Below, piece after piece: positions 31,099-64,000 of a stretch of DNA of 64,000 nt. A program made the translations under genes and the position numbers. The DNA is from Penicillus capitatus (lineage: Eukaryota; Plantae; Chlorophyta): contig OZ287705.1 of NCBI GenBank assembly GCA_965649825.1, forward strand, positions 62,001 to 126,000, read 5' to 3'. Below the pieces are notes generated by a model. That model saw nothing but the letters and a program-made list of their open reading frames with translations. It searched no databases and was not told where the DNA came from. The first letter of the stretch is position 1; each line of letters begins with the position of its first letter.

Positions 31099-31198
31099 CG
31101 TGGGCGTTTCCTACGTCCTCCGTCAGATGTGACGTACAAAGGCGAGCTGATGCTGATCATTTGTTCGATTTTCTTACTAACGTTTCTGGGTTTCTATT

Positions 31199-38422: not shown

Positions 38423-39367
38423 CCGTCGCAAACGATGGCCTCGAGCCTTGTATTCATGTCACAGACGGTTGTCGCGTGTTATGAGAGATCTCTTTGAAAG
38501 AATAACACTTCTCGGACTGTCGGTTCCCTGCCATGCGTAACTGCGGTTAACGAGACATTCAGAATAGCGTCCAGAAAGACGAAAAAGCCACCGACGATCC
38601 ATCTCCGGGGCGACGGACGTCCGACGCGACTCCTCGGGTCGCATCGGCCGTCGCGTCGCGGGCCGCGCCATTGTTCGACTTCCTGAATGTGTTCTTATGA
38701 ATCTTAATGAAATCATCAGGTAAGGCTCAAGGGCCGATGCGCTGCTCATGCACTTCGTCCTTGATCTAGTAGTGCTGGCAGGCGACACTGTTTGATACGA
38801 GACTCTCTACATACACAACGACAAACGGGCTTCTTCCAGTCACCTCTGCGAAACAGAAGTGCAATCTCTACTCAGGCAACAAATATCACACTAGGCAGAA
38901 TAAGACAGTGAATAGAAACGGGATTGCTGTGCTGTATCGATTGTCACCAATCGATCGACCGAACGAACGAACGAACGCCGTTCTGGGTTCATCGAGCACA
39001 TGTTTCAGAAAGAGTTGAATGCGCACATGGACGACCTCCGGTCTCGTCTGCGCCCGAACCAAAACGAAAACAAGACACACCCAAGTGCAGCAACAAGGAC
39101 GACGGAGACCAAAACTTGGGTACTGCATACAGAGAAGGATAACACCGATCAAAAATTGCCCTCTCCCCCGCGCTCTCCCAGGCAAGAATGCGCATTTCAG
39201 CTTGGTCTGTGTTTGCTAGACGTACAGTACAGGAAAGAAAACTGACTACACAACGAGGGGCGATGTCGCCCGTTTCCTAGAGGCTGCTGGATTTCAAGAG
39301 GTCACAGAAATCGTACGGATCCAATCCGACAATCTTCCTCGTGGTCTTCTTCGGCAGGGCCGACATC

Positions 39368-41309: not shown

Positions 41310-44300
41310 CAGCGAGTCTGCCAATCCCTTCGATCGCGACGCTTAGAATTTCATTACTGAACAGTTAGCTGTGCTGTAAAGCGATGTTTTTTCATTGCCT
41401 TGCCAACAGTCTCCCTCAGAATCGCAAGGAAACCACATCACCTAGAAATCGACGGCCACAGGTGCGGATTCACCTAATTCTGTCTTGTGCATGATCCGGT
41501 CACGTCATGAGCGTCGTGCAGGAGTTCTTGCAGATCGAATTCTTTTATACTCGATTCTCCTTTCTGAAATATGAATCCACGATCCTTTGACATAGAATTT
41601 GATTCTGAGCTTCGACTGTGAAAATGGCGTCGCTCCACTCTCATATGTAAAATAACTGTCACCGATCATCCATCATAGAACAAGGCGCTTCGATGGTCGT
41701 GATGCTGATGGATACACCAGGGTCATCTCTAGACCAATGAATCGCAGACAATGACGTCCTGATGTTTGTTAATCAATATCGGTGCCACTGTAGCTAGAAT
41801 GTGCTTCTGCGGAAAGGACACGATCATCGTTGTTCGTAGCAATTGATCATATGCGACGAACTCTCTGACTTGCAGCGTAGTCATGGAAGGGATAGTTGGC
41901 AGAACAGACCGCGTCTACACTTTCTTAGCCGTCTTCATCGATATGGCCTTTTCCTTGTCGAACACCACAGAATGCTATCACGCTCTTGATGTGGACAGTC
42001 GTTTCTGTCAAACTTGCTGAGGCATTGATCTTCACGTTTTCTGCAAACATCTTCTCCTCGTACTCATACTGTGTACGGATACACGACTGGCTACTCTGAA
42101 GTAGTTGAAGTAGTTACAGGAGTCAGGATATTCGACCAGACGACATAGGCCCGTCAAGAGCGGTCCAGACCACGGCTGCCCTGTTGTCGGCTCGTTTAAA
42201 ATGTCATACTTCGGATGCATCTCCCTAAAATTCAGGAAGTCCGTAGGAGACGCTGCGAATCTGCCCACGATATTACAACGTGTCCAATATGCTGATGTGC
42301 TGCATTCTGGGAATTCCTTGACTAGGATGCTGATTCGCGAGAGAACTGGCGGATGTTCTGTCAGGCCGATCGGTCTAAGGCTAATATTCTTAATTAGCCG
42401 AGAAACGGAAATTCGTGTCGGCTGCAAAGTTTGTGCGATGTGATCTTCGTCCGATGGAAAGATGACGGTATAACGGCCGGCGTTTTGATCGTTGTTGCTG
42501 GTAGTGCCCATTTAGGTCGAATGCAGATCGTCGGTACGATCAGATCTGCTGAGACGACGTCACATCAGTCCATCATACCGTCGACTGCACCTCGGAATCA
42601 ACAAGCGTCGATCTGGCGCTGTGAACGCCGATCTGGTCGGACTTCTTGCCATCGTCGGCAAAAACTCCAATGATATCGTTCGATCGGGACGATGAGATGT
42701 GGACGCGATTCGGCAATAGTCGTTCGAAACCTATCGGTGCGCTTTCGATCGTATTGATCTGTCGTCGACTCTTGGGAAGAAATCCGTTCAGATCATGCTG
42801 CATAACATTAAGTTCATCATAGGCGCACGAACAAAACGACGACCTTTGTAATAAACCTGCGTCAAACAGAAAATAAAGGTAGGGAGGATGTGACAGTCAT
42901 CAAATGCATACTAACGATCAAAAGGCGACGCCGCCATTTCTTCTCTGTAACGGCACGTCACATCAAACAAGTCGTGTGTCTCGTAGCGTATCGGGAAGTT
43001 CTTGACCATATCGATCTGTTTCGCAAGGGACAGAGGACGCACAAGGTAAAGGAAGATGAAACAAGCCGACGTTGCAGGAAAACTCAATCAAGTGCAGCGA
43101 TCGCCGAAATGACGACCGTCGTCGAACGTCGCATCAACACCAAGCGAATGTACATACGCTCAGAATTCGTAGTCAGCCGCCAGCCGTCGCACAAGCAGAG
43201 AAACAGGAAACGCTGAGTGACAATTTTCTGCTGTCAAGGACGATAGGCACGCGGCCGGCGACGTATAGATACCTAGCTGCACTCAAGCAATTCTGTTTGT
43301 GCGCCGTCCATTTCTAATTGTAGAGCACCACCGCTACCTACCGCTAGTCGCGAATAAAACGCAGTATTTGTCGAGTGCCTGTTACAATACACTACGTCGT
43401 GCACCATCAAGTGGCGTTGTCTGTGTTGTTGTGTGTACGACGAAACCGTAGATAGGAAAAGACTTGTCATGACTAAAGCTCAGGTAAAAGAAGACACATC
43501 CAAGACAACTACTCAGTCATTCGCACGGCTTCAGCTGTCTTTCAGCTGGCCACGCATGTCTTTAACTATCCGTCGGCATCTAACAGCTGGCGTCGAAAGT
43601 GTTCAGAAGTTATTGGCATCGTGAATTATACAGGCTACCAAATAACTACACGTGCACTACTCTCAACACTTTGAACAGCAAGCGCCTGTTATAAGAGAAA
43701 CCGGCAAGTCAAATGCCACATACGAAAGAAATGAGATTCGATGAACTGTTTTTCATGGCTCTGACACCGTGTATTTTTCAATCGCGATTGTTTAGAGAGG
43801 CTGCTGCCAATACGTTTGGCGACGTCTACCGCAATCGGGACGAAATGCTTTACGCCCAGCGCTGCGCGTGCTTTGCGCGATGAAGGGTTCTATCCGTACG
43901 ATTATAGGCAAATTGTGGTCGTTCCGTCCGACCGGAGGAATGAAGTAAAACATAGCGCCATTTTGCAAGTGCTTCGAGTGAACGAGCACACGAAGAACCT
44001 AATCAAGACTGTCCCGTTCATTCCAAACCCGGACGGACAGCATGGTGATACGTCACGTCTGACGCGTCTTTAACTGTAGTGTCTGTTTTTGTTTGTTTCT
44101 TAACATGTATGTGAAAGCGATGGAGCACGGCTGTTCTGTAATTAGTGCTAGTGGACCGTTCGCATCTGGCGGCTGATCTCATAGGCAATGGAATAGGACT
44201 CTTTCTATCGTCTTCTTTGACATTCGACTATGTTATGCGTGAAATATTATCTCAAAGAGAACCGATACGAATCAAAGAACAAGTTCCGAGGGACTCGTTT

Positions 44301-45006
44301 TGACGAACGGCAATGTCTTACTCAAAACTTTGGCCTCGATAAATGCCTTTTGTTCTCTGTGGAGATTCCCCGCTAGTTTCCGGTTATGCGTTGTGTGAGC
44401 TAAACTCATACTCCAAATCGTTATAGATTCGAAAATCAAGTATCGCTGCCCGTCTTCGTAATCGAATCCGCACTGCCCCCTTATTTTTGGGTAACGGTGT
44501 TTGGCAAAAAGTCTGTATCCACGACGATCAACGAAATGAAAAAATGCGCTCACAAAGCCATGTTCGCGATGGTAAGTATGAAAGGGAAGACGCAGCAAGG
44601 CCTGTGCGTTTTAGACAGAGTTCGATAGACGGTTGTTTCGTCTCGCAGAACCGCCTCGCTCGGTCTGCACCCCTTCGGCGTTGTCATCCGAGTTGCGCTG
44701 CGACATGGAAAAACCTTCTAACCAACCAAGTGAATGGATAATGTGATGTACTCGGGATCGCGTTGGCGCTTCAGTCTTGACTCCTTTTGTTCTGTCGGAC
44801 AAACATCTCTACCGCTTTACTCCAAGAATGCTCTCCGAACAGCGACCAGATCATGACGCATGTGTGAGTTAGTTTCAGTGATGTTGTCGCACATTCAGCA
44901 TCAGCAAAGACTGCACGAGCCTCTTTCGGCGCTCAAAAACCAAGGATCCAGTGACAGACGATTCTTTCAGGTGAGAAAACGATTCCACTGTCCATTGGAG
45001 CATTTT

Positions 45007-45142
45007 GTCGCCGATCGTCGATCGATCATCACCCACCGTCGCCGATCGGCGATCGATCATCACCCACCGTCGCCGATCGTCGATCGATCATCACCCACCG
45101 TCGCCGATCGTCGATCGATCATCACCCACCGTCGCCGATCGT
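45007..45142. repeat. 31-bp minisatellite, ~4.4 copies
   Basis: Unit GTCGCCGATCGTCGATCGATCATCACCCACC at 45007, 45038, 45069, 45100 plus a partial copy; one substitution seen; no spacers. Confidence 0.95.
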
Positions 45143-45310
45143 ACTAACTATTTGGACGAACGACATCGACTCTGATGTGCCAGGCGACCGTTTTTTGCCG
45201 ACTCCATATCGACCCGCTTCCGAAGCTCGAGATGTCTTTGCTGAGCTCGTGGCACTGTTCCAAGAACGGATTGTCATTATCGATGGAGCGATGTGCAGTT
45301 GCGTCCGGAC

Positions 45311-47540: not shown

Positions 47541-50025
47541 ATGGAGTCCATATTCGTTGTGCTCCGTTTCCTCGTTTTGTTTTTCCTTCCAAGCTGGACC
47601 GACGCTGCCAACTCGATCCTGCCGGAGAATACCTTTGCGAGAGATTCTCTGAACGACGGCATCGATGATGGAGAATGCGTCGTTCCAAGAGTAAGCCTAA
47701 TCGTTTTAGGGTTCGTCATTTCGTTCGCAGTATGAAGGTGGAAGCGTCTTGGCTGGAGGGCTGTGCGCCAACAAGCCGTCGATCTATTCGACGGCCGCAA
47801 GCATCGGAGGCGGTACTGTGCTGTGCTGCCGAGAAGGAAACGAGTGCTGTTCTGCAGCCAATCACTGGTCGACGGCGACGCCTCGCGTGGTCCGCAAACG
47901 CAGCCGCCTTCCGCCGCATTTCTTTTGGGGGGATATCCATGGGGTCAACTACTTGACGGTGTCGAGGAATCAGCACATACCACAGTGCGTCTCGTCGACT
48001 GAACGCAACGAGTGGACGCCGTGTGTATGCAGGTACTGTGGAAGCTGTTGGGCCTTCGGGACAACTTCCGCCATCTCCGACCGCATGAAGATCATGCGGC
48101 GTAACCAGTTTCCAGAGATCATCTTGGCCCCTCAAGTCCTGATTAACTGCGACGGTGGAGGGACATGCCAAGTGAGCCATCTCGCGTCTCGTGCTGTGAG
48201 GAAGACGGCGCCGCCGTAGGGAGGACAAGCCGGTGGTGTCTACCGGTATATGGCGGAGCACGGATTGCCAGATGAAACGTGTCAGAACTATCGAGCGAAA
48301 AACCAGCGATGTGCAGAGACGAGTGTCTGCGTCAGCTGCAAGCGAAACCATGTAAGGGACCGTCATCGCGACAGGCGCAATAACGGGATGTTTGCAGGCA
48401 AACAGTCGCGGCGAGTGCAAGGCCGTGAAGGACTTTACCCTCTACAAGATCTCTGACTATGACTCGACGGACGCTGACGCCATTCGAATGTACCATGCCT
48501 TCAGCAGCAAGGCAGACAACATCATGAATGAGATCTACAAGCATGGACCGGTTTCGTGCACGCTGTTTGCCACCGACGACTTCGACGAGTACACTGGCGG
48601 CATCTATTCTGAACACGGGATACGGTGGAATGCTAACCACGTTGTCAGCCTCGTCGGATGGGGAGAGGAGAACGGCATCCCGTAAGCAGTCCCTCCTTCT
48701 GCAAGGATGCCCGATGAGTGTTGCGTTTCTGGCGCCTAGATACTGGATCGGTCGAAACAGCTGGGGAACCTACTGGGGGGAGAATGGTTTCTTCAGAATA
48801 ATACGGGGCGATGCTCGAATGAATCTCGGAATCGAGAACGATTGCACGTGGGCAACACCCAAGGTTCCGAAGCATCTCCTGCCGGACGATCCTCTCCCCG
48901 AGTGCGCACCGCTCTCCTTTCCATCCCCTGATCCCTCAGTACTGTGTGTAGAGACGTACCGTACGGAGAGTTTTTGCTGGACTTTCACAATCCACGCAAA
49001 CATATCTCAGAGAATGCCAACGATTCCGTCAGGCGCCTCCACGCCAAGAAACCAAAGAAGAAAGCGACCAAGAGACCCACTCACTCTAGGCAAGACGATA
49101 CCGTCGGATATGACATTCGGTCACACTTCGGGATGAGTTATGCTTCCATCAACAGAAACCAGAACAACCCTTACTACTGCGAGTCCTCGTGGGCTCAGGC
49201 TGCCACATCTGCTCTCAACGATAGATTTGCGTTGCTGAAAAACGCCTCGTACCCAGAAGTCGTTCTCTCTGCCCAAGTGCCCATCGCTGCTGTCTTGTCA
49301 CTCGAGGCGAATACTGTCTCCTAGGTTCTACTTAATTGTGTAGGAACAAAAGACACCGACGGATGTCGCGGCGGCGAGGTGCACGATGCCTACAAGTACA
49401 TCAAGGATCGCAGCCTGCCGGATGAATCTTGCTCGCCTTACGAGGCGAAGCCCAACGAATGCACCGACATACACGTGTGCAAATCCTGCTGGCCGGACAG
49501 ATGCTACGCTCTGAAACCTGGAGAATACACACACTACACCATCAAAGATTACTACAGGGTAAGCACACGGAGCGAAGACGGCAGGCCGTATCTGTGTCTG
49601 CTGCTCAGGTGTCCGGAGATGAACAAGTGTTGAAAGAGATCGTCGCCAGAGGACCAGTCGCCTGTCGCGTCTGCGATTCGAAATCTTTTCTTTCTTACAC
49701 GGGCGGCATTTTTTCAGACGAGAAGGCCTACCCGTGCAGAACAGTCTCGAAGAAGCATGTCGTGCTGTCCGGGTGGGGAGAAGAGAACGGTGTTAGATTC
49801 TGGATCGGCAGAAACAGCTGGGGAACCTACTGGGGAGAGATGGGGTGGTTTAGAGTAGCAATGGGCAAGGGCGATATGGGAATCTCGACAGATTGCTACG
49901 CTGCTGTGCCAAAGCCGCCGAAGTACCACCATCTCTACCAGCAGAATAGAATCTCCGGAATAGCTAGAATCAAAAAAGAGTTCAGAAATCAGGATAGAAG
50001 CGAATCTTCCAGTTTCCTTGTCTGA
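47541..50025 (+). CDS. Secreted tandem (double-domain) cathepsin Z/X-like papain protease; second domain lacks catalytic residues
   Basis: Signal peptide MESIFVVLRFLVLFFLPSWTDA. Domain 1: RNQHIPQ|YCGSCWAF…NHVVSLVGWG…WIGRNSWG. Domain 2: RNQNNPYYCESSWAQ…KKHVVLSGWG…WIGRNSWG. Seven GT-AG introns. Confidence 0.92.
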
Positions 50026-51134
50026 TCGAGAGTCGGGATCGGCGTCCTAGTCTGTGCAATTTATGGGATCTCTGGATAAATGGTTCTCTTTTTGCTGTGC
50101 TTATTCTTAGTCATATGCTCAAACTCAAGATACGGCTTTCTAGCTTACGTCGTACATTGCTCTCTCTTCTGGCCGTCCATCAACAAGAGCCTCGCAGGGA
50201 GGTTATCAAGCACAGTACATAATTTTCCTACAGGTAGATTTCTTGAAATATTTTTGCTTCATAAGCTTCGGTTATCCAGTAGCACACCAGAGATCATTTT
50301 TCATGCACAGAACTTGTTTTTTGACAGGCATAAACGTAAGAAGACAGGCCAAACCAGCTGTAGTTGGATTCTCTTATTGGGTTCCTGAGTTGTCAGAGGC
50401 TGTTATGTTTTAGCAACGGATTGAAATAAGCGTTGTAATGTCAGTTGTTTGAGGCCGTCGATGTTCGCAGAATGGATGCATAGAGTGAGATCACTGCCTC
50501 GACATCAAGCACGTTTCACTGGTGTGACCATCCAATGCCGATGCACATTGCCACGGAGCCATTTCGGTTGACCGTTAGGCGCTGTCAGGAATGGTCTGTG
50601 CGCATTAGGTGTCGAATGGATACCCTCAAGGAATTTAATCGGATCGTTTTGTTGTATGCGTGCTCTACTTGATTAGATAGATTAGATACTACTGATACGC
50701 AGTTCCACGTGTGACTCGTATCTAGCGATGGCTCCCGTTCGAGGAAATTCTATAGAGTGCGAAGGTGGACAGAAAAGGAAGCTGTTGAGTGGTGCAGCGA
50801 GAATGGTGACGGATCGCCTCGAATAATAGAAGAAAAAAACCGTGATGGACAAGAAGTACGTGCGCTCCAACCTTGGTGAGAGCATCTACTACTACGTTGT
50901 ACTGTTTGAGACTTTTTGGCAAAACGGAACGGAAATTCAGGCATCGGTAAAGGCCGGGCATAAGCACAAAAAAGATAATGACTTGTTGGATGTCGATTTC
51001 TAGGCGATGTGGTTTCCTTGCGATTCTGAGAGAGACTGTTGACAAGACAATAAAAAACATCGCTTTACAGCACAGCTAACTGTTCAGTAATGAAATTCTA
51101 AGCGTCGCGATCGAAGGGATTGGCAGACTCGCTG

Positions 51135-53102
51135 TTATTTCTTCGCCGCCAATCGACCGAGAAGAGAAGAGAGACGTCGGAGGATGCGATGTCCTCCGAA
51201 GCACCCCGACGGACGAGGGATCTCTTCGACATCATCCATCACCAGTCCAGGCGATTCTTGTCCCTTCGACGAGATGCTGGGCGAACGATCACGGAATCGG
51301 ACTCTCTGACGCAACGACGGCACAAAGAGCTCTGGTCTTCGTATCTTGATCGCGTAGGATTTGGCGTTCTTGCACAGCCATTTATTCTCGGAGATCTCTC
51401 TGAGACGGGGACGGTTCCTAGCAGACGGTGACAGGAGAGAGCGGATCAGGGATCGACACTCCGACGAGACATCGGACGGAAAGGGCTTTATCGCGTTCCT
51501 CTTGATGTTGGCCACGGTGTGACCCATACTGCTTGGATGCTCTGGATCCTAGAGCAGCACAGCGGAGATGACGCTGCACCCGCCGCCCGACTGCGATCGC
51601 ACTTCGAAGGGATAGGCCCCCGCGACCAGGAGGTAGAGCGTAACGCCTATGCTCCACACGTCGACGGCGGTCGCATCGTATCTGGGTCCCTCCTTCGGTT
51701 CCGGCTCGTCCGCTGCCCCCAGCATCTCGGGCGCCATGTAATCCGGCGTGCCGACCCTAGAACGAGACGCGCTCGGCACAGAAGATGCGCGGGCGACCGA
51801 AACCGTGCCCGAGCGTGTTGGCCAGATCGAGGTGCTTCGACAGTCCGAAGTCGACGATCTTCAGATTCTGCGTCTTCTTCTCCACCATGCAGTTCTCCGG
51901 CTTCAGATCGCGATGGCAGTACGCCTTCTCGTGCATGAAGGAGACGCCCCTGAGGATGAGATGGACGAAGAAGGCGGCCATGTCCTCCGGCATGCGGCCC
52001 CCGACGTCTTCCAGCAGGTCCAGCAGGTCCTTCCCCTCGATCAGCTCCCACTGCGATCAAACGAACACGCCGTCAGCGATTCTGGCGACAAGGACAGGCG
52101 ACTGACGGAGAGGATGAGGTGATCCCCATCGGCGAAGACGTCGAGCAGCCGAACGATGTTGGGGTGACGTACGGAGCTGGCGTACTCAACCTGTCACCAC
52201 AGCAGACAATGTCAACCGTCGTTTTTCTCTGAAAGAGTGAGACCACACTTCGCGTTTGACCATCTTGAAGGAGAGACTCTGCTGATGCTCCGCGAGATTC
52301 ATCACCTTCGCACGGGAACGCAAGCGTCGACCTCGCCTCCTCGGCTGTACTGTACGACGTGACCTTGAGGGCAACGCGACCGCTGCCTCTGGCGCTGTCT
52401 TCCGCCTCGTAGACGACAGCTGTCGCTCCGCCTGCACGCCTCGACAGCGTCTCGGCACAGTGAACGCCGTCCGTCTTACGGTTGATTTCGCGGACGATTC
52501 GATAGCGTCCCTCGTTGAGCAGCTGTCCGGGAGCGAACGGCTCGGCCATCTCGTACTGTTCGCGAACGAGCCGATGGTGTTGCGTGATGTGACACATCTC
52601 GGCGAAACCGCACGCGCACGTACGCACTCCATCTATCCTTCTGCTCCATTTCAAACGAACTGGAAGTCGAACGCGCATACGTCTCCCCACACGCCATGAC
52701 CTCGTTCGTCCGCAGATTGGCCAAAAGCCTGTCCCACGACTCAGGCGCCGGAGGACCTCGCGACCCTCGCTGTCCGGAACCGCTCTCGACGAAGCACTCC
52801 AGTCCGAGACAGCTCTCCGCGTCCCCCAGCTTCAATGACTTCAGCCTCCGTGCAGAAGAAGACGGTGAGCGCATTAGAGACGCGACGCGCAGCGCACAAT
52901 GTCGTTCGCGTGCAGCCGTCGAAGAATTCGGACGGGCCTTCTGGACGAAGACCCCCACCGCGACGACGATGCATCGTCCGACGGCATCCTCCTCCGGTAA
53001 CGCGACGTCCTTCTTCGACGACGGCGGACTCTCTCGTCTCTTAGGCGGTTCGACGCCGACGGAGTCTCCCGTCGGGTCGCCGACGGAGTCGACATCCTCC
53101 AT
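51135..53102 (-). CDS. SnRK2/CAMK-like kinase, copy 2 (apparently intact)
   Basis: Mirror of 39368-41309 with the same motifs. The indels I found are intronic or in-frame (21-nt duplication, [12 protein letters not shown]). Confidence 0.88.
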
Positions 53103-53969
53103 GATGTCGGCCCTGCCGAAGAAGACCACGAGGAAGATTGTCGGATTGGATCCGTACGATTTCTGTGACCTCTTGAAATCCAGCAGCCTCTAGGAAACGG
53201 GCGACATCGCCCCTCGTTGTGTAGTCAGTTTTCTTTCCTGTACTGTACGTCTAGCAAACACAGACCAAGCTGAAATGCGCATTCTTGCCTGGGAGAGCGC
53301 GGGGGAGAGGGCAATTTTTGATCGGTGTTATCCTTCTCTGTATGCAGTACCCAAGTTTTGGTCTCCGTCGTCCTTGTTGCTGCACTTGGGTGTGTCTTGT
53401 TTTCGTTTTGGTTCGGGCGCAGACGAGACCGGAGGTCGTCCATGTGCGCATTCAACTCTTTCTGAAACATGTGCTCGATGAACCCAGAACGGCGTTCGTT
53501 CGTTCGGTCGATCGATTGGTGACAATCGATACAGCACAGCAATCCCGTTTCTATTCACTGTCTTATTCTGCCTAGTGTGAGATTTGTTGCCTGAGTAGAG
53601 ATTGCACTTCTGTTTCGCAGAGGTGACTGGAAGAAGCCCGTTTGTCGTTGTGTATGTAGAGAGTCTCGTACCAAACAGTGTCGCCTGCCAGCACTACTAG
53701 ATCAAGGACGAAGTGCATGAGCAGCGCATCGGCCCTTGAGCCTTACCTGATGATTTCATTAAGATTCATAAGAACACATTCAAGAAAGTCGAACAATGGC
53801 GCGGCCCGCGACGCGACCGCCGATGCGACCCGAGGAGTCGCGTCGGACGTCCGTCGCCCCGGAGATGGATCGTCGGTGGCTTTTTCGTCTTTCTGGACGC
53901 TATTCTGAATGTCTCGTTAACCGCAGTTACGCATGACATGGAGCCAACAGTCCGAGAAGTGTTATTCTT

Positions 53970-56059
53970 TCAAAGAGATCTCTCATAACACGCGACAACC
54001 GTCTGTGACATGAATACAAGGCTCGAGGCCATCGTTTGCGACGGTCGCAATCCTGAGGAGAAACCCGCCGAATCTCGTCTGGCGTTCAGGCCAATGTTTG
54101 TTTGCTCCTCATCGGCTTTGGATTTACGAATGAAGCTTCTCGTACGAGGGACATTCTGCGCCACTTTCAAGATCATGAACTCGCGCATCACTCGCAAATT
54201 GCCAAGCGTATCGATCTGTGGAACCTCTTCTATTTCCAGTACGACGCGCATATAGGCAAAGGTTGCCTGAGAAAAGACAAAGCCCAAGAAAGCCAACAGT
54301 CCACAGATCGACAGAAAAAATAAAACCGACAGCGATACCCTCAGAGCATTTCCGATCCGATCGTCATTGAATAAGAGAGCCATGACAAAGGTAATGTTCG
54401 AGAAAAAGAGAACGGCCTCTTCATACACATTCAGACTGGCAAATTCGTTTCGGAAGGGATGACATATCGTGTGCAGGTACAGTGCCGTGGTCAGGATGCA
54501 GACGGCAAGGATGGCTTGGAGGTTCGATCCTAGGTGGTATCCAAATGCCACGACGATCGTCAACAGCGCTTTTCGGAAGAGGACAAGGGATTCCCAGTAG
54601 ACAAACCTGTCGGCGTAAGCCCGATACGGAAACGCTGTGGCATCCATGAACCAGGTCTCGTGCGAGGGATCGAGGTTTCTCTTTCTCGCAGCTTCCACGA
54701 CAACAGCACTGGGAATCCGATCGTGAAGAAAAGGAGGACGGGTAGGCCAAGGACACTGACAAGGATGGCATGGGATCCTGCGAAACACTTGACGGTGGTT
54801 GCCTGTATCCAGCGATAGCTCGTGCTTTCTGCGCCTGTGTGGATGAATTGGCGCACTCGGACGCAGGAAAGCACATTCACGGCGTTTTTGGTGATCCAGA
54901 CACAGCTCAGGTAGGAAACTGCAAGGAAGCTCAATGACCACCTCTTCTTCAAATACTCCCAGCTCTCTGCGGATCTCATCGCCACGCAGAACCAGAAAAC
55001 GCCGTGCAGGAGGAGAGCGGCAACTGGAGCGGCTATGGCGACGATCGGGGGAAGGATGGATCGGGGGAAGGCGGCCTCCACCGGAATGAGACATTCGATG
55101 GAAAAAGACGCCGTGTTCAACATCGTGCCTCCAATGACATCTATCCATCGAACAGTCTGTCCCTTATCCGAAAGCGGGACGATGGCGGCCTACCTGTTGC
55201 CGAGATCAGCGACTTTTCCGAGGATGTCCAGTTGGAGCTGATGTATATCGCCACCGAAATCGTCTGCAAAGAATTGATCGTGATCTGGAAACAGAGATTC
55301 TTTACGGAACCGCGTCTGATGCTGTATGTACCTTAAAGATCTCGACGAGTTTCCACTTGGCCAGTTCGGCTGAGAGTTGGCTATCTTCGTCGCTTCCATG
55401 ACTGCCTGCGATCTCGGTCGCCTGGCGCCTTGATGAGACGACTCTGCTTGACGGACCACCGAGTTCTGCCAACTGGAGTTCTTCCGAAACAGAAACGGTC
55501 CTGATCAGCTTGCGTGCTGGCACTTGGCGAAGGAGTCGCGCGATGTCTTGTCCACTTGATAGAGCTGGTCCCAGACTACTCTTGATGGCGAAGCTGCTGG
55601 GTGCCAAGACGACGACAACAGAGAGAACTAGGTAGGCAATGCTCGGGTCCTTGTCGCATCGGTCGCAGTCCCAAGAAGACGTATGACCGTATCCACTTCT
55701 GCATTCACCACAAAGCGGTCCTCTGTATCCCTGCTTCACGAGAGATAGGAGAAAAGGGGTTAGGAGAAGGAAAACGAGACCTCGTTGCATTGTTCTTCGG
55801 CATAGGCACTTTCAGTGGCCGCGTTGAGATCACAGTCGTGCACATCTTTTGTGATGGCGACCAGCTGCGCCTCTCGATCAAAATCGCACGCCGATTGGCT
55901 CAGGCATTCCTGCATGTGTAAGGAGCACGGATACGGATGCCAGTACTTCGGTTCGGCTGAATGACGTTATCGGATGCACAGTTTGCATTAGGAGGACACA
56001 GCTGACACGCGTTGTCCTCTGGCGACATTCGATACTGTGTCTCCGTGCATCGAACACCT
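53970..56059 (-). pseudogene. Cys-rich multi-TM gene, copy 2 (shared frameshift, extra frameshift, stop-codon loss)
   Basis: Same frameshift as copy 1. Additional 1-nt deletion at ~55948 (CCGAAGTACTGG vs CCGAGAGTACTGG). TGA>CGA extends the last ORF to 53970. Confidence 0.75.
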
Positions 56060-57033
56060 AGTTTCCACTGCCCGTGCGGCGCCCTCGGGTGAAGTATATC
56101 GCCAGCTGTCCATTGGAGGCGGACGGCGACCCGACCCACAGCCTAGTGGCAGACACACACATATTGAGTCATGCTTTACGACAGAGGTAGGGATCTGACC
56201 TGGGGGGTAGCGAAAGCTTGCAGGGCCCGCTTCTGTCACCATCCACGACAGGGACACCGACCCGTGCAAAGCCTTACCCCACACCTTCACTGTGCTTTCC
56301 CCCTGCAGAGCCAGCTAAGGAGGCGAAGGCGGCGCGCACGCTAATAAAAAAACACACAAGGAAGGGACAGAAAAAAGCAAAACACACAGTGTAGATGAAG
56401 AAACACACATGCAGTCAAACACGAACAGAGAAACACACAGTCAAGAAGGCAGGTGGCCGGTCTCAAGCCCAGACAGCACAGTAACAAACAGGCAAGCACA
56501 GGGAATGAGAAAAAATAAAATTGGGAAACAATAAACACGAACAAATTAAGCGCGACAGAAAGGTCGCCAGAGCACACATAGAAAAAGTAAAAAAATTAAT
56601 GTACAGTCAAGAAAGAGGCTACTTACTCTAAACACAGAAAGGAGAACAGAAAGAGCAGGATCTAACAAAGTAATAAAAAACTAATGTCTAACACGGCGAA
56701 ATGAAAAACCCACTCAGGACGAAAGAAAAGACCCTAACAAGAGACCCTTACAGAAAAAAGGGAAACGCGGGTCCTGAGTGGGGGCCTCCAAAGCCAGCAT
56801 CCTTCAAGGTACCGGCGACAGATCCGAACGCGAGGGGCTTGGATCGGGCCCAGCGCTTCAGAACGACGCCACGTCCACGCATACTCCGCCTATCCCACCG
56901 CAGAGCTGCCTCAGCCAGGTGCCACCGCCAGGTGACAGCTGCATCTAGAACACACAACCATGCGTTGACCCCTGGGTGTGATGGCTAACTCGGCTCACGT
57001 GGATTTCCCGAGGGCGCCGCTGGCAGGGAAACT
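56060..57033. mobile_element. Mirror copy of the putative TIR-bounded element
   Basis: Inverted repeats at 56060-56089 and 57007-57033; A-rich core 56340-56770; ~21 nt longer than the left copy. Confidence 0.45.
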
Positions 57034-58602
57034 GTAATGGTGCCCTTTTCACGTTGGGAGGCATCGCAGTCGCTCGGGAATCTATTGGCCTCAGAGTCTC
57101 CTTGAAGAAACAAATACGCTTAGACGATGCGCGGTCGCAGGAGAGCCTACTTGCATGGAGAGTCGACGCACGACCCGTCGGTTAGGAGTTTGCTTTTCTT
57201 CGGACGCAAACTGCGCTGCATGCGTCGTCCTCCGCGCTCGTGGTTCCACTGTCCGTCGTCGTTCTCTTCGGGCGGGTCGGATCACTGCGGAAAACAACAG
57301 ACGACCTCCGTCGACAAACCTCCGACTGCGTTCGAGTTCCGCCTTCTGCGATCGGTTTGAAGGGCGTGCACTGCGTCGCCGAACCAACGCACGAACAACA
57401 GGAAGGTGGTCCGCACACAAATCGCAGTGGTTTGCAGCTCAGTCGGAGAGGAACACAGGAGACGAACACAAAAGACACGAATCAATGGTCGCCAGACGAT
57501 TTATTCGTACGACGGTTACCACGCATCGCCACGACCGCGATTCCATACAGCCACACACGCTGCTAACCATCGAAAGGCTTCTGTCGGATATCTCTTGGAC
57601 ACGACGAAGCATTGCTAGAACCTCTCTCAGGATGCTGAATACCAGTGTCGTCTGGCAGGAGTGGGGCCAGACGCATGTTATGCCAGAGCGTCTTCCTGTG
57701 ATGGCATTCGTCATGTGACACAATGGATCGTGTTAACTCGTATTCGACTGTCATGAGCACCACCCAGCTCTTCGCTGCATCTTTGCATGAGATGTCCACG
57801 TCATCTCCTTTACCCTTGGTTCCAGTATCCATGACCTGACAGCACATCTTGTCTAATGGCAGTTCGACAACAGAGATCTCTTTGTTCTTCTGCCGAACTG
57901 ACAAGTTAATCAGAGACCACTCACATCCATCGGCCGAAAAGGTTGCCAGTTGGCAGAGATTGTTTGCTGCCTCATGTGAGGCGACTCACCAGTCACTTCA
58001 ATTCCATCTTCGAATAAACATCGCCGATCCAAATCATCCACTTCGTTGGTTTCCGGGGTCATCATGAACGCGAATTAAGGGAACATGACCAGAGACTGCA
58101 GCACGACGATACACAGCCGGTGCCAAGATCGTTTGAAGCGATGTTTGACTAGATGCATCGATTCGAGCGGTACGCGTCACATCAGCTACGGCATGCATCA
58201 TGGATGCACGAAATGCCTGAACCACATGTGCTGACACTTGCATGACTGGAGTTCAACATCGATTTCCCAATCGCATAAGCTTTAGTTCTTATTTTGAGAT
58301 CAGAGTCGATTCCTTTCTCCCTCGCGTTGTCTGTTAACATGAAATCCGTTCGTCTCGCTAGTGTCTCTGGTACCACGTTTTGCATTCCGCGCAGTTTTTC
58401 TCGCAAGAATCGGGCACCGAAGCGCATTGCCGACATCCCAAAAGCGTCCGAATGCACTTTCACCAGTCGTCCGAGTCCCCAGTCGCCGTCCTCTCTGGCG
58501 GAACAAACGGAGGACGAGCGTGCACGAACAAACATCTGCATAGAGTACTGCCGAATGACGCGTCGTCGTCGCACCGTTCTGTGCTTTTCTAGGCGCTACT
58601 TC

Positions 58603-58848
58603 TGTCGCCGGTCGGGTCGGACGAAAATACCAACAGCGGAAGACTTTTTTTGTTTACAGAGCAAGGGCAAACATGGTGCGAATTGTCCGTTTCAATACGC
58701 CAGTGGCGACGTGACATGCCTATGCAGGTGAGTCATCCTTGCGCCAGAACCAGAGGATGGCGCCTCAGGTGACTCAACCTGCACCCCCTCAGAACATGGA
58801 CCCATTGAAATCGAGGCAGTCACATCGCCAAGCCAGATCTTGGCGACA
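58603..58848 (-). repeat. 3' LTR (246 bp)
   Basis: Direct repeat of 60061-60306; differs at 58693 (C vs A at 60151). Confidence 0.96.
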
Positions 58849-58862
58849 CCACGCTTCCCGCC
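58849..58862 (-). promoter_or_regulatory. Polypurine tract-like sequence
   Basis: Minus strand GGCGGGAAGCGTGG directly precedes the 3' LTR. Confidence 0.6.
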
Positions 58863-58910
58863 AAACTCCGAAAAACAGCAAAAAAGACCCCGCAAAACAA
58901 CACAATTAAA

Positions 58911-59906
58911 TCAGTCGATTCCCGAGGTGAACGTTCGTCTGAAAACTGAGAAAATGCTCCATCCTGATTCTGCATTTGCTTCCTGCGACCCCTCCGCTCT
59001 CTGATGCGTATCCGATGTCGTCGGATCCGCTGACGCAACCGTATTAATCCGCACTCGCGGACAATCCTTGGCCAGATGTCCCTTGGATCGACAGCTGTAG
59101 CATATCCGACCGCGCTTCATGGCACCTCCGCCATCATCCGCCGCGTCGGCAGCTTTCGCTCTTCGTCGTCTCGGGTAGCGCCCCATGTCGTGCAGCACTC
59201 TCTTCATCTGCTGCAATGTCTTCAAGCTTCGTCGCCCCTCAACCGGTCTCGTTAACATCACCTCAGCTGTCGTCTTGACATCGTTCTGCAACGTCTTCAC
59301 CTCATGGGTCAACGACTGTAGACAAGGCACCAAGTCAGGTGCCGAAATGAACTTCTTTTTCGCCTCTGCAAAGGCGGTCTCTGTCTTTCTAAGCTTCTCA
59401 TGAACAGAGGAGGCTTCTACGCGTGCCTCGTTTTCGCCTCGTCGGGCCTCCCGAATGTCCCGTTGTAAACTCGCATTGAACTCTGCCAGTCGCTCGCTCT
59501 CCCGGGTCGCGTCAGCACATGCCCTTCGCGCCTCGGCGGCCCTTTGTCGTTCGCGTTGCAGCTGCCGCTGCAGCTCTTCCTTCTCTGCATCGTTCTCGAG
59601 CCTCATTCGTTCTAAGCTCTCTCCAAGTGCTAGTGTCTCGCGGCTCAATTCAAGCACGTCTTGCTCTTGGCGAAGCTTCTGACAGACGTTGCTGAGGAAC
59701 TCTTTCATGTCCCCATCCGCAACCAAGTAATGCAGACCGGCGTCACCCCTTGTCCGGGCTGCCACCGCGAACCCGACTAGACTGGGAAATAATTCCTCAT
59801 CTTCACCCGCGGTTGCGACGATGCTCGTGTCGCGTAGCCACACTACGTAAGAACCCTCCTCAAAGTCCTGACCTTGCTCCACCTCTCCTCGTCGTCCTTG
59901 ACTCAT
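58911..59906 (-). CDS. Gag-like ORF (331 aa): long coiled coil + CCHC zinc knuckle
   Basis: MSQGRRGEV…; heptad-rich segment (…LERMRLENDAEKEELQRQLQRERQRAAEARR…); CYSCRSKGHLAKDC = CX2CX4HX4C. No RT, RNase H, integrase or protease motifs. Confidence 0.85.
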   Translation of the reverse strand: MSQGRRGEVEQGQDFEEGSYVVWLRDTSIVATAGEDEELFPSLVGFAVAARTRGDAGLHYLVADGDMKEFLSNVCQKLRQEQDVLELSRETLALGESLERMRLENDAEKEELQRQLQRERQRAAEARRACADATRESERLAEFNASLQRDIREARRGENEARVEASSVHEKLRKTETAFAEAKKKFISAPDLVPCLQSLTHEVKTLQNDVKTTAEVMLTRPVEGRRSLKTLQQMKRVLHDMGRYPRRRRAKAADAADDGGGAMKRGRICYSCRSKGHLAKDCPRVRINTVASADPTTSDTHQRAEGSQEANAESGWSIFSVFRRTFTSGID

Positions 59907-60047
59907 CCTGAAACCGTCGTTCCTTGAAGACTCCTGGTGCCTAGACCTCTTCTCGGCAGGACTCACACTCCACAAAGGAGGGCGCAGTGCACAGAGCAGG
60001 TGCGCGACGTCACTTAGACGGAGCTTCAACCTGAGGAACGTGTCAAC

Positions 60048-60059
60048 GCTCCGAAACCA
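60048..60059 (-). promoter_or_regulatory. Primer-binding site, tRNA-iMet-like
   Basis: Minus strand TGGTTTCGGAGC, 1 nt from the 5' LTR; 10/12 match to the plant iMet PBS TGGTATCAGAGC. Confidence 0.75.
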
Positions 60060-60060
60060 C

Positions 60061-60306
60061 TGTCGCCGGTCGGGTCGGACGAAAATACCAACAGCGGAAG
60101 ACTTTTTTTGTTTACAGAGCAAGGGCAAACATGGTGCGAATTGTCCGTTTAAATACGCCAGTGGCGACGTGACATGCCTATGCAGGTGAGTCATCCTTGC
60201 GCCAGAACCAGAGGATGGCGCCTCAGGTGACTCAACCTGCACCCCCTCAGAACATGGACCCATTGAAATCGAGGCAGTCACATCGCCAAGCCAGATCTTG
60301 GCGACA
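60061..60306 (-). repeat. 5' LTR (246 bp) with TATA-like TATTTAAA (60148-60155)
   Basis: Direct repeat of 58603-58848; adjacent PBS defines it as the 5' LTR. Confidence 0.96.
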
Positions 60307-62489
60307 ACTTCTCCGCTTACATATCCGTCGAAGAATGCCCCGAGGGATACCGGGTCGAGAACGTCGAAGGCGAAATTCCGGCAGAGCTGCACGGCACCTA
60401 CTTCCGGTAGCGGACACGCGATTCTCATGCCATTCGTATCCAACGCGTGGCGATAGGAATGGCCCTGGAGAGATTGAGTTCTTGGGCGAGACGTTTCGTT
60501 CGTTCTTCGACGCGAATGGCATCATCGCAAGCATCGCCATTCGAGACGGCAAGGCCTTCTTTCGGTCCAGATTTGTCCGGACACTTCAGTAGGGCCGACC
60601 CTGCGGCACTTCTCAGTCGCATCATGTCTTGCAACGCAGTTCTATGATCGAAGAGGAGGCTGGCAGGCGGTTGTTTACTGGCGTGTTCGGATCCGTGCCA
60701 AAGAACGGCACATTGCCTTTCGCGTCATTCCTTCCCAGGAACCCGGGAAACGGAATGCCCATTGCGGCAGGAAACAAACTACTCATCCCACAAGAAGTAT
60801 CGTCATCTGTTGCGTGATGCGGCCGTCGTTCTGCAACGCCTTTCTTTGCAGGGTGCCTATTTGACGGTACTCGACCCTTACACACTGAGGACGATCGATC
60901 CGCGATCGAAGCAAGATGTTTTTTCTACTGTATGGCATCTCGGCATGAAGCAGTTGTTCTCTCCCCCACAGAATTCCAATGAGGCTCTCGCGATTCCTTC
61001 TCGTTTGGTACATGGCATTAGCGCTAATGAAGTATCCAATCGTTCTAGGTTGCCGTCATCTGGATGCTGATTCCGTTTTCGGCGTCGGCGACGCTGTATA
61101 CGATGCGCGACGTGACGTCACTGTCTTGTCTATGACACAATACGTGGTCAAAATCCATTTCGCTTAACTTTCCTTTGAGCTGTTCTTTTCTGTAGCCGAC
61201 CCTCTCTTCGTCATTTATACGAACGGATATCAGCCTCTGCGAAATTGACGAAGATCTGAAGGTTCGTGCTCGACAGACGTATTCCTTTGACGACCTCTCA
61301 CTCCTGCACTCCATCGGCGTCACTGAAAACTATTACGTCTTCAACAAGGTAAAGCCGGCGATACGATTGCCTCACTCGCAACACTCGATCTCCAGTTTCC
61401 AATGCGAATGGATATGAAGAAACTTCTCGATCCGAGTGTCGGCGCTGGAAACGCATTCGTCTTCGAAGATGGCGGCGTCCACGAAGTGAGATGTCTGTAT
61501 TAAAAGACGACACACGAGAAAACCTCGAGTGTTTCAGCTTCATCTGTTGCCTCGTCCATCACCCGACGGTGATGTACCGAGGGACGCCGCACCAAAGGTC
61601 TACCAGGTACGCACACCATGCTACCCAACCGTCTCATTGTTGTGTGACCTGTCTGACGTTCGTTGGCAGCTCGAGGAGACGACCTTCTCGTTTCACTTTA
61701 TCAACGCCTTCGAAGAGGACGGTCATGTGATCGTTGACGCGACCCACTATCCGACATACCCGTTCGGCCGTACTGCCGATCAGAAGCCGTCCGGCTTCGA
61801 GCTCTACGAACCTGATATCGGCATGGGCCCACGGTCTCTGAATCATCTCGAGTGTCTTTCCTGTCGCTATGACTTTCTTCTTAGGTTGAGGCGAACGACA
61901 CTGTCACCGGACGGTGGCGTGGAGACGAGAGAGATGACGGCGTATGAAATGGAATTCGCCAGTGTGAATCCGCACAATGTCGGATGACGTCAGCGCTACA
62001 CCGTGGCGTCGTCGACGTTCGAACAGGACGATCCGCCGATGTGCAAATCGCGATTGGGTGCGGCCGGAGGGTCACAGACGGAGTAAAGAATGCGTGAAGG
62101 GACGCGCGACGCGCGACTGCCCGATGGCGGTCGGTCGCTCTTCGCAGCGTCGGAAGCCGGAGAGAAGTCGGTGTTTCTGACGAGCCGCGATAGGCACTTG
62201 GGGAAGAGGAAGCCATCAAGACCGCAACCTGCAGCATGGACAGAACTGCTTTAATCTTGGTCTCTGCGGGCGTATGCAAACGTCGCGTCGGACGATGGCA
62301 CCGCATGACAGTCAACTGTCGCCTATGACGCAATGTGAGCAACACGGTGCTCGCGCGTTTCATCCGTCTCGTTCCCGCGGCGTCGAGCTGCGCATCGTTG
62401 ACGGCCCACCGACGTGGGGCCACAATTCCTTTCATAAGCTCTTTATTCTGAGCCTACTTCTTCGCGTAGGCTTGTGCTGTTTCCTAAAG

Positions 62490-62927
62490 TTACACATCTG
62501 TCACATCACCAGTCACCATGTGAACATCCTGCTCACACAGAATACTCCTTGGAGGTAGCCGTTGGGCTGCTTCTGCTCTTCTAGGTCTCCTTCGCGGTTG
62601 TTGCTCGTGCGCTTCACCCCCTCCATCTCCACGTTTAGCCGCTATCTCAGCTTTTTGGCCTTCCTTCGCGAACGGTCCACTTTCTTTTGCAGTCTGCTCC
62701 CTTCGCACGCGATCTCCGCTTCGTCGATCTTCATCTTCAGAGAGGAACTCGCGCGCTAGGTGTTGCGCTTGCGGGGGATGGATTCTGCTTCCTCGCGACC
62801 TGGCTTCCATCGCCTCGATTCTCAGCTCCATCTGTGCGAGTTCTGCCGTCTGGCCATCGACCGTCTCCGACAGTTGCTCGTTCCGAGCGTTTAACACTTT
62901 CATCTGTTGCTCAGCACCTGCGCTCAT
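62490..62927 (-). pseudogene. Coiled-coil remnant, mirror copy
   Basis: MSAGAEQQMKVLNARNEQLSETVDGQTAELAQMELRIEAMEA…; same in-frame TAG as the left copy. Confidence 0.35.
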
Positions 62928-63031
62928 TTTCGTTCGAACCGCAGAAACGTCAGTAAGAAAACTGAAGGAGTAGTCAGCATCAGCTCGCCTTTGTACGTCA
63001 CATCTGACGGAGGACGTAGGAAACGCCCACG

Positions 63032-64000
63032 ATGCGCCGCTCTGCGCGAAACTACGCCAGCGTCGGGCGTTGGCTCTTTCATTCGCGTTTCGTCGCCGTC
63101 GTTCCGACGCTCCCAGACACTGACGGCGTTCCCCCGGCCAGATCTGCCGTTTCACCGATCGGTTCTTTTTACCCTGCTTCCCGCAGATGCCCATCCCCCA
63201 TGCCAAAGAGCGTCGATGTCAAGACGGCGCTCTGCTGGACAGGCGCGACGCAACTCCGTTGGTTTCATGTCGTCTCAGAAAAGCAGCATCCAGAGATGGA
63301 CAATATCATGCCGGAGAAATACCGTCTGCTGAAACGAACATCGGATTACGTTCGTGAAATGCGACAGCTGATACGCGACCGCTCTTACTCTCGCATCCTG
63401 GATCTCTTCGAAGACATGAAGTCACGTAGTATCCCGTTCGACGTTGCGGTCTGTATGCTGGTCATAAAAGCCTATTTGCGGATGAACAATGTGGACATGG
63501 TGAAACGGGTGCTTGACGATATCATGGCGTCAAGGTTGAAGTTAGACAAGAGGGAGCTGTTTAATTCCATCATCCGCGATTGTGAAAACACTGGCGATGT
63601 TGACGCTGCTTTCAAGTTATATCGCCAAATGCAGAAGGACGATCGGATTTTACCCGATTCAGCTACATACCGTTCGCTGATCAACGTCTGCAGGAGGGGG
63701 AAAGACGTGAATCGTGCGAGAAAGGTATTTAATGAAATGGTCAAGAAAGTTGGAGCCAAAGTTGGTGGCTTCAATGCCATGATGGAGGTCTATGTCGAGA
63801 ATGTCGACAGTGACACTGGCGAGGCGTACCTGCGGGAATGCAAGTACCTTTTGTCATTGATAAAATCGAAGAAAATCCAACTCCATGCAGACACCTATCT
63901 GTATCTGGTCAAACTGTCTGGCAAATTGGGACGGTTGGACGAAGCGCTGGGTTACCTTAAGAAATCTGTCAGCAGTGATCTGGGGCCAAGTCTTGCCACG
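63032..64000 (+). CDS. PPR protein paralogue (partial, runs off the window)
   Basis: Open frame from ATG 63032 to the window end (323 codons). The first ~71 codons are near-identical to the 31098 gene; the rest is a diverged PPR array (…RELFNSIIRDCENTGDVDAAFKLYRQMQ…PDSATYRSLINVC…). Confidence 0.9.
   Translation, partial: MRRSARNYASVGRWLFHSRFVAVVPTLPDTDGVPPARSAVSPIGSFYPASRRCPSPMPKSVDVKTALCWTGATQLRWFHVVSEKQHPEMDNIMPEKYRLLKRTSDYVREMRQLIRDRSYSRILDLFEDMKSRSIPFDVAVCMLVIKAYLRMNNVDMVKRVLDDIMASRLKLDKRELFNSIIRDCENTGDVDAAFKLYRQMQKDDRILPDSATYRSLINVCRRGKDVNRARKVFNEMVKKVGAKVGGFNAMMEVYVENVDSDTGEAYLRECKYLLSLIKSKKIQLHADTYLYLVKLSGKLGRLDEALGYLKKSVSSDLGPSLAT

Follow-up and report, generated by a model that had tools for sequence, protein, structure and literature searches.

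Non-autonomous long terminal repeat (LTR) elements are usually viewed as decaying derivatives, which are either non-coding (TRIM, LARD) or keep the Gag protein of their partner (TR-GAG). To our knowledge, TR-GAG elements have been described in land plants only. Here, an LTR retrotransposon of 1.7 kb is described that occupies positions 58603 to 60306, on the minus strand, of a 64,000-nt stretch of DNA (the window), which is contig ctg340382_23x of the metagenome assembly ERZ25074695 (metaMDBG, 23x). Coordinates are positions within this window, unless a locus label precedes them. The element is real and recently inserted. It is probably a young copy of a semi-autonomous LTR family, of which the single open reading frame (ORF) encodes a capsid-less protein and for which Pol would be supplied by a Ty3/gypsy-like partner. 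The family appears to represent a third stable solution for such elements: a genome of 1.4–2.0 kb with one selected, capsid-less coiled-coil/zinc-knuckle gene, kept from >60% down to ~30% identity and accompanied by a covarying leader.

The closest described architecture is that of the TR-GAG type, which consists of an LTR, a primer-binding site, one ORF in the gag position, a polypurine tract and a second LTR, and which is semi-autonomous as the enzymes are missing (PMC13570524). The window family has the same layout without protease (PR), reverse transcriptase (RT) and integrase (IN), is likewise a few kb or less in size and is also present in multiple copies with intact ORFs. However, the TR-GAG ORF encodes a recognisable Gag with a capsid (CA) part, related to an autonomous Ty1/copia or Ty3/gypsy partner, whereas the ORF of the window family shows no detectable CA and is unrelated to the gag of its candidate partners. 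Moreover, TR-GAG elements are land-plant elements while the window family, on present evidence, does not come from a land plant, and its lineage keeps the layout to ~30% protein identity. The suggestion of an earlier reading of this DNA, made from the sequence only, that the element belongs to an undescribed class is therefore too strong, as its architecture is of the TR-GAG-type semi-autonomous kind. Its novelty lies in the type of protein that it encodes and in the lineage of its host. With TRIM and SMART elements, the family shares its tiny size, short LTRs, the primer-binding site and polypurine tract, and the reliance on Pol in trans. TRIMs are non-coding, however, while the window family has a selected ORF that fills ~60% of the element.

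In function, the nearest analogue of the protein is ORF1p of LINE-1, which assembles as a coiled-coil trimer and packages the very transcript that encodes it (PMC6428221, PMC5940361). Some ORF1 types carry CCHC knuckles (PMC4120745, PMC3905857). ORF1p and the protein studied here both begin with a variable N-terminus, continue with a coiled coil that evolves rapidly and end in a module that binds nucleic acids. Nevertheless, no sequence or fold homology and neither an RRM nor the ORF1p C-terminal domain (CTD) was found in the window ORF by Pfam and Foldseek. In addition, LINE-1 is a target-primed, non-LTR element, whereas the window element is of the LTR type with integrase-style duplications, and the resemblance to ORF1p is a functional analogy only. 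With the nucleocapsid (NC) of retroviruses and Ty3, the protein shares a CX2CX4HX4C knuckle behind an arginine-rich stretch, along with weak matches in the PDB to NC p10 and HIV NC. NC normally forms the C-terminus of a Gag that also contains CA, while the knuckle of the window protein sits on a coiled-coil rod.

Structure, insertion and spread of the element

The element and its target site consist of the following features, in which 5′ and 3′ LTR refer to the orientation of the element.

58598–58602, no strand: left copy of the target-site duplication ACTTC, with the same 5 bp at 60307–60311 and a single copy at the empty site
58603–58848, minus strand: 3′ LTR, 246 nt, TGTCGCC...GGCGACA, 245/246 identical to the other LTR
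58849–58862, minus strand: purine-rich tract GGCGGGAAGCGTGG, directly beside the 3′ LTR, conserved in the family
58849–58873, minus strand: tail motif TTTCGGAGTTTGGCGGGAAGCGTGG, including the polypurine tract adjoining the 3′ LTR, conserved across the family
58911–59906, minus strand: single ORF of 331 amino acids plus stop codon (Pfam, family alignment, AlphaFold2 and the ratio of nonsynonymous to synonymous substitutions, dN/dS)
59907–60046, minus strand: structured 5′ leader past the primer-binding site, a candidate packaging or dimerisation signal (pairing and compensatory changes)
60047–60059, minus strand: primer-binding site TGGTTTCGGAGCG, shared without change by all family members, a TRIM-like element and the Ty3/gypsy-like element at locus L011
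60061–60306, minus strand: 5′ LTR, 246 nt, with a TATTTAAA box (LTR alignment)
60307–60311, no strand: right copy of the target-site duplication ACTTC, matching the left copy
33826–33830, minus strand: empty target site, with ACTTC present once, in the other arm of an inverted duplication (arm comparison)

The following structural claims of the sequence-only reading were recovered in the window: 246-bp LTRs with one mismatch, 7-bp terminal inverted repeats, an ACTTC duplication, an empty site in the sister arm, a polypurine tract beside the 3′ LTR, and one intact ORF of 331 amino acids without RT, IN and PR. The LTRs have TG..CA ends and the terminal inverted repeat of 7 bp is perfect. Their sole mismatch (58693 versus 60151) lies within a box resembling TATTTAAA. 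The primer-binding site begins with TGG, one base past the 5′ LTR. Between the LTRs, 1212 nt are taken up by a leader of 154 nt (measured from the LTR end, with the primer-binding site included), the 331-codon ORF with its stop codon and a tail of 62 nt that terminates in TTTCGGAGTTTGGCGGGAAGCGTGG, leaving no space for PR, RT and IN. The start of the ORF was set at 59906, as the N-termini in the family read MSRxRR.... A mechanical ORF of 510 amino acids and a gene call of 505 amino acids were rejected as artefacts of read-through into the LTR and the flanking gene. An octamer, TTTCGGAG, occurs twice per small element at all loci, once inside the primer-binding site and once just upstream of the polypurine tract (60052–60059 and 58866–58873 in the window).

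The insertion site lies in a large inverted duplication with arms at ~30161–41458 and 50987–63972, which are 75–100% identical in blocks and are separated by a 9.5-kb spacer. The sister arm reads ...ggcgctACTTCtccgc..., with both flanks contiguous around one ACTTC, which makes it an exact empty site. This, together with the 5-bp duplication, shows that the element was inserted via an integrase-like reaction. The divergence of the LTRs (0.4%) is below that of the arms near the insertion site (1–3%), so the insertion is younger than the inverted duplication. The latter is either a true segmental duplication or an effect of the assembly, in which two haplotypes were fused in fold-back orientation. 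In the second case, the filled and empty sites represent an allelic polymorphism instead.

The element is not alone. A search of 5.8 billion proteins yielded 31 homologues of 219–406 amino acids with 41–63% identity, none of them fused to pol. A profile search against 1.84 billion representatives added distant small proteins (182–318 amino acids, ~30% identity) with the same layout and gave otherwise generic zinc-knuckle matches only. A scan of JGI metagenomes with the family alignment likewise returned zinc-knuckle matches only. All homologues originate from three ENA metagenome assemblies, including ERZ25074695. The organisms of ERZ25074695 and of a sister sample, ERZ26696514, are close relatives, as their host proteins are at least 90% identical.

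Thirteen ORF-bearing copies were inspected, i.e., those of the window and of loci L001, L002, L003 (two copies), L004, L005, L006, L007, L008, L013, L014 and L015. All of them are LTR elements of 1.39–1.97 kb with LTRs of 123–275 nt, except for the L013 copy, which measures 2.67 kb and has a nested insert. The multi-copy, pol-less family to be expected from the sequence-only reading thus exists, with 31 homologues and with every inspected ORF-bearing copy being a small LTR element. Clear target-site duplications were found in seven copies (ACTTC, AGATG, ATATG, GGAAG, GAAGG and AGTGC of 5 bp, and ACGT of 4 bp). LTR identity amounts to 98–100% in seven of the nine copies measured, to 95% in the rearranged L002 copy and to 83% in the old L008 copy. 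Moreover, one identical protein is encoded by the copies at L004 and L005, each of which has a target-site duplication of its own, and this points to recent transposition; the family has indeed transposed recently in several related genomes. The ORF is intact in 10 of the 13 copies. The remaining three are degenerate, with a broken ORF in the second L003 copy, the nested insertion at L013 and a disrupted ORF at L014.

The ERZ25074695 contigs with family members differ in coverage (16x, 21x, 23x, 41x and 344x). This spread suggests that several related genomes or strains are present in one sample, all carrying the family. At L006, 300-nt repeats 8.1 kb apart were considered as LTRs of a large element, and were rejected as a dispersed or segmental repeat without LTR features.

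The encoded protein and its evolution

In the ORF protein, a small beta domain at the N-terminus is followed by a long coiled coil, a pair of helices, a basic linker, a CCHC knuckle and a tail with the conserved end ...FTSGID. Two of these parts were located as follows.

59256–59717, minus strand: coiled-coil region, residues ~64–217 (AlphaFold2 helix, heptad occupancy and length steps of seven residues)
59061–59102, minus strand: CCHC zinc knuckle CysX2CysX4HisX4Cys, residues 269–282 (PF00098 and invariant columns)

Pfam detects zf-CCHC (PF00098) alone, at residues 268–283 (E=1.5e-5). The knuckle columns C269, C272, H277 and C282 are invariant in the family, and a conserved basic stretch with consensus PxRRRR precedes them. 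AlphaFold2, run on an alignment of 28 members, gave a model with a mean predicted local distance difference test score (pLDDT) of 70. In this model, a three-stranded beta unit (residues 20–62) is followed by an unbroken helix of 122 residues (64–185) with pLDDT >90, by further helices at 189–219 and 228–242, by a disordered arginine-rich linker and by the disordered tail. A ~30%-identity relative, modelled likewise, gave a matching picture without a CA fold. Foldseek searches against the PDB and BFVD returned no matches at E<=0.001. A chromodomain was considered for the N-terminal beta domain and was dismissed, as the Foldseek match was not significant (E ~2.7, root-mean-square deviation of 12 Å). 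Profile searches against the PDB matched zinc knuckles (NC p10, TUT7) and coiled coils of a generic kind (myosin rod, keratin, C/EBP, ZapB), and nothing else.

Additional evidence for the coiled coil comes from its sequence. In residues 120–217, hydrophobic occupancy of the heptad a and d positions is 0.75–0.88, compared to 0.05–0.25 at the other positions. The strongest independent evidence is provided by length variation. The spacer between L84 and A161 has 16 distinct lengths among the 28 family members, 10 of which follow 42+7n (42, 56, 63, 77, 84, 91, 98, 105, 112 and 133; binomial 1.2e-5). The other six equal a heptad multiple +1 or +4. An offset of +4 is the classic coiled-coil ‘stutter’. 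As the lengths change in heptad steps, the region appears to evolve as a register-preserving rod, and this heptad-quantised variation forms a clean natural record of coiled-coil rod evolution.

The same argument bears on the presence of a capsid. Neither a Retrotrans_gag/CA match (Pfam) nor a helical-bundle or CA fold (AlphaFold2, Foldseek and PDB profiles) was found. With a register-preserving rod in the centre, no capsid N-terminal domain (NTD) plus CTD would be hidden there, and too little ordered sequence is left elsewhere. A cryptic CA fold is therefore unlikely, as far as the models go, and the most fitting description is that of an RNA-binding protein of the NC type, which lacks a capsid and sits on a coiled-coil stalk. 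This agrees with the sequence-only reading, which had noted the long coiled coil and the CCHC knuckle (here supported by the high-pLDDT helix, the heptad occupancy and PF00098) and had recognised no capsid fold, which was found here neither by AlphaFold2 with Foldseek nor by Pfam or PDB profiles.

Judging from the substitution patterns, the ORF is under purifying selection, and the selection among copies that was anticipated by the sequence-only reading is hereby found. Pairwise Nei-Gojobori dN/dS ranges from 0.2 to 0.47 in all pairs, at synonymous divergence (dS) of 0.3–1.4, and from 0.20 to 0.46 in the conserved C-terminal half of the ORF. The N-terminal domain and the coiled coil are fast-evolving. 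The two halves of the ORF can differ strongly in their distances. Between L001 and L003, dS is 0.30 in the N-terminal half and 0.74 in the C-terminal half, and between L002 and L003 these values are 0.85 and 0.08. Such mosaic distances are the pattern expected of template switching between co-packaged RNAs.

Replication signals, candidate Pol donors and rival explanations

The primer-binding site (TGGTTTCGGAGC) is identical in every member, including the ~30%-identity relatives from the second and third assembly. A homologous leader (...GCTCC...CTCCGTCT..GTGACGT.GCG...CTTTGTGC...) is present in all members as well. The tail motif TTCGGAG..GGC..GGAAG precedes the 3′ LTR in all members, again including the ~30%-identity relatives, and is also common to one TRIM-like element and two Ty3/gypsy-like elements. 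The covarying leader is specific to the ORF-bearing family. RNAalifold predicts seven helices on eight aligned leaders. In this alignment, 95% of the cells are paired versus 38–56% when the partners are slid, compensatory double changes occur in eight pairs versus 0–1 in the slid controls, and the observed values were attained in 0/500 shuffles. The covariation in these eight sequences is suggestive, not conclusive, and the leader fits a candidate structured packaging or dimerisation signal. Taken over the substitution and pairing patterns, selection maintains both the ORF and the leader.

From the primer-binding site, a primer tRNA with the 3′ end ...GCTCCGAAA(CCA) is expected. The only tRNA-Met detected by ARAGORN is an elongator (CAT) with a 15-nt intron (L001 14367–14454), of which the 3′ end mismatches the primer-binding site. 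In the ~270 kb searched, the iMet-like label that the sequence-only reading had given to this site found no support. No rRNA or other informative RNA was detected. Besides these signals, TGTAA is present in six LTRs checked by eye (window, the small element of L004, L007, L008 and L011), in the window near the U5 end. As a poly(A) signal, however, TGTAA shows no enrichment in the 400 nt that follow each of 14 host genes (2 seen, ~3 expected). A green-algal host, considered on the basis of this signal, was therefore dropped, and the ‘algal’ attribution of the sequence-only reading found no support in this test.

Two Ty3/gypsy-like elements come into view as candidate Pol donors. The first, at L004 (2206–8333, duplication ATGGT), contains RVT_1, RT_RNaseH, Integrase_H2C2 and rve domains. 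A 1.39-kb ORF element (5701–7092) is nested in its pol, and the Ty3/gypsy-like element itself is inserted in the 5′ LTR of a 1.19-kb non-coding TRIM-like element, resulting in a three-level nest at 2141–9460. It shares the tail/tract motif of the family (TTCGGAGTGGCAGGAAAGCG). The second, at L011, was found via an RT search, its RT cluster comprising 11 member sequences. It is ~4.7 kb long and carries gag, a PR ORF, RT/RNase H and IN. In the PR ORF, an LDTGA active-site motif was seen by eye, and Pfam gave no protease match. Its primer-binding site (TGGTTTCGGAG) is that of the family, its tract (GGAGATTGGCAGGGAAGCG) is exactly the one of the TRIM-like element at L004, and its LTRs have TG..CA ends. 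The RT-based partner search returned two proteins, both from ERZ26696514, and no pol-bearing relative was present in the window’s own sample within the fetched loci.

The small elements and these two Ty3/gypsy-like elements share the region TTCGGAG..GGC.GG.AAGCG around the tract, TG..CA ends and 5-bp duplications, while the primer-binding site is shared by L011 only. In contrast, the Ty3/gypsy-like elements measure 4.7 kb with PR-RT-RH-IN, their leaders and LTR bodies differ, and their gag is homologous to the small-element protein over the knuckle only. The gag ORFs of L004 (2368–3471) and L011 (7044–8483) are homologous to each other. When compared to the small-element protein with hhalign, only the knuckle aligns. 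Neither of these gag ORFs has a Pfam Gag/CA match. Both contain CCHC knuckles, a short coiled coil and hydrophobic stretches that resemble transmembrane segments, and an atypical Gag may be the general rule in this host.

The 1.19-kb TRIM-like element at L004 has the primer-binding site of the family and the tract GGAGATTGGCAGGGAAGCG. As its primer-binding site is the same and its tract identical, trans-mobilisation in these genomes is suggested, and the L011-type lineage probably already mobilises this non-coding, TRIM-like parasite. By its signals, an autonomous lineage with the same primer and tract exists in the sister genome and is a candidate Pol donor. The only lead in the window’s own sample comes from a third locus. 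At L002 (9296–9860, also listed as 9281–9860, minus strand), a 560-nt LTR′ ends in TGTCGCC..GGCGACA like the LTRs of the window element. It is accompanied by the same primer-binding site, its U3 core is homologous, and it may be the LTR of the autonomous partner of the window family. Its U3 core holds a TGAGTCA/TGACTCA (AP-1/bZIP-like) motif pair. This LTR′ lies head to head with a small element, which has no target-site duplication there.

Several observations weigh against the reading as a semi-autonomous family with a capsid-less protein and Pol from a Ty3/gypsy-like partner. In the ~270 kb of window and fetched loci searched with ARAGORN, no tRNA matches the primer-binding site. The primer-binding site of the L004 Ty3/gypsy-like element (TGGTGCGGTCACC) differs from that of the family, and as a partner this element was ranked below L011 for that reason. 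L011 in turn comes from the sister sample ERZ26696514 and not from the window’s sample, and its copy is degenerate, with a truncated 5′ LTR and pol ORFs in different frames. The claim of the sequence-only reading that Pol is borrowed in trans hence stands as to a candidate donor lineage and not as to a partner with the same LTR termini, as no autonomous element with TGTCGCC..GGCGACA was recovered in the fetched loci. As to the protein, its structure was modelled as a monomer and from shallow alignments (28 and 9 sequences), and dS in the N-terminal half of the ORF is saturated for many pairs.

The simplest rival is that the element is a one-off internal deletion of a full-length LTR retrotransposon with an ordinary Gag. 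Such derivatives are common, and the ORF does occupy the gag position and has an NC-type knuckle. Nonetheless, the family comprises dozens of diverged members, no inspected copy is a large element, size and layout are kept to ~30% protein identity with dN/dS of 0.2–0.47, no method gave a CA match, and the gag of pol-bearing elements is homologous over the knuckle only, making this explanation very improbable. The sequence-only reading had named this very case, with no other copies and no selection, as the one that would undo it, and the data disagree with it on every count. An artefact of assembly, in which a chimeric or fold-back contig creates the apparent repeats and the empty site, deserves even less credence. 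The contig does come from a 23x metaMDBG metagenome assembly and its inverted arms could be two haplotypes head to head, but the LTR structure, the duplication and the filled/empty pair then stay valid as an allelic polymorphism, and independent copies with their own duplications occur on many contigs in three assemblies.

Other rivals concern the nature of the protein. It could be a true but highly derived Gag that builds a particle by coiled-coil-driven assembly or with a cryptic CA, so that only Pol is borrowed. Its gag position and NC-like C-terminus fit this view, its long persistence suggests an essential structural role, and the local Ty3/gypsy-like gag ORFs likewise lack a recognisable CA. 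Outside the coiled coil and disorder, however, only ~60 N-terminal residues and two short helices remain, which is too little for a CA NTD and CTD. Moreover, the central region tolerates indels of 14–95 residues in heptad steps, as expected of a rod rather than of a globular domain in a shell. A derived Gag is thus unlikely, while being the most serious of the rivals. Clearly less plausible is a captured host gene or a modulator of the partner’s assembly (like Ty1 p22 or the Fv1-type Gag-derived factors) that does not package its own RNA. The lack of detectable gag homology and a fast-evolving N-terminal domain and coiled coil, as in conflict, would be in line with such a role, but no cellular (non-LTR-flanked) homologue beyond generic knuckles was found among the 1.84 billion representatives, all homologues that were examined are part of LTR elements with one and the same leader, and this leader covaries and is specific to the ORF-bearing family.

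For the semi-autonomous family with a capsid-less protein, the following mode of propagation is proposed. The ORF protein would oligomerise through the coiled coil, and its basic/CCHC part may bind its own transcript through the family-specific leader. By analogy, it would act like a nucleocapsid or a LINE-1 ORF1p-type chaperone with a preference for its own RNA. The resulting ribonucleoprotein (RNP) would be reverse-transcribed and integrated by PR, RT/RNase H and IN of a Ty3/gypsy-like autonomous element, which probably also provides the particle shell. From the shared signals, this donor would have its primer tRNA and polypurine tract in common with the family. The recombinant mosaics could arise when different family RNAs are packaged together.

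A bolder version of this proposal, to which we give somewhat less than even credence, is that the family is an old, self-sustaining lineage in which a capsid-type Gag was replaced or never present. A LINE-ORF1p-like coiled-coil chaperone, co-evolving with a private leader, would then coat its own RNA, while Ty3/gypsy elements would be exploited for their particle and enzymes. Should the protein act in the proposed way, the family offers a very small natural system to study what the trans-mobilisation of an LTR element minimally needs, by which means a parasite of a parasite secures the packaging of its own RNA, and whether an ORF1p-like coiled-coil RNP strategy converged in LTR elements. As no Gag or Pol domain is detected in them, such elements are missed or misfiled by domain-based annotation of transposable elements.

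The interrupted host gene and other features

Small ORF elements of this kind can disrupt genes, and the window copy splits a carotenoid-oxygenase gene.

58555–58602, plus strand: start of a carotenoid-oxygenase (RPE65-family) gene, comprising its first 16 codons (MTRRRRTVLCFSRRYF); the insertion interrupts this gene, which resumes at 60307 (PF03055 match)

When the element and a 49-nt GT-AG intron are removed, the flanks encode MTRRRRTVLCFSRRYF|SAYISVEECPEGYRVENVEGEIPAELHGTYFR|NGPGEIEF..., and this joined N-terminus fits positions 6–72 of the PF03055 profile (E=3.9e-17). More RPE65 matches lie further downstream in both arms. The element cuts the coding exon after the first in-frame ATG, between bases 2 and 3 of codon 17. 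With its coding exon split, this gene copy is most likely inactivated. The copy in the sister arm is intact at the insertion point.

A number of other features were noted. The spacer between the arms contains two tandem pieces of papain-family (Peptidase_C1) genes (48528–49136 and 49429–50025). The window further holds a 31-nt tandem array (44976–45161), a 73-nt tandem repeat (19694–19904) and a diverged direct segmental duplication (18–2274 versus 17961–19758, ~17.5 kb apart). Outside the window, ORFs for TYW3, Kelch (TYW4-like), TRM5/TYW2 and JmjC (TYW5-like) lie head to tail on one strand at L001 841–5153, forming either a wybutosine-pathway gene cluster or a fusion gene.

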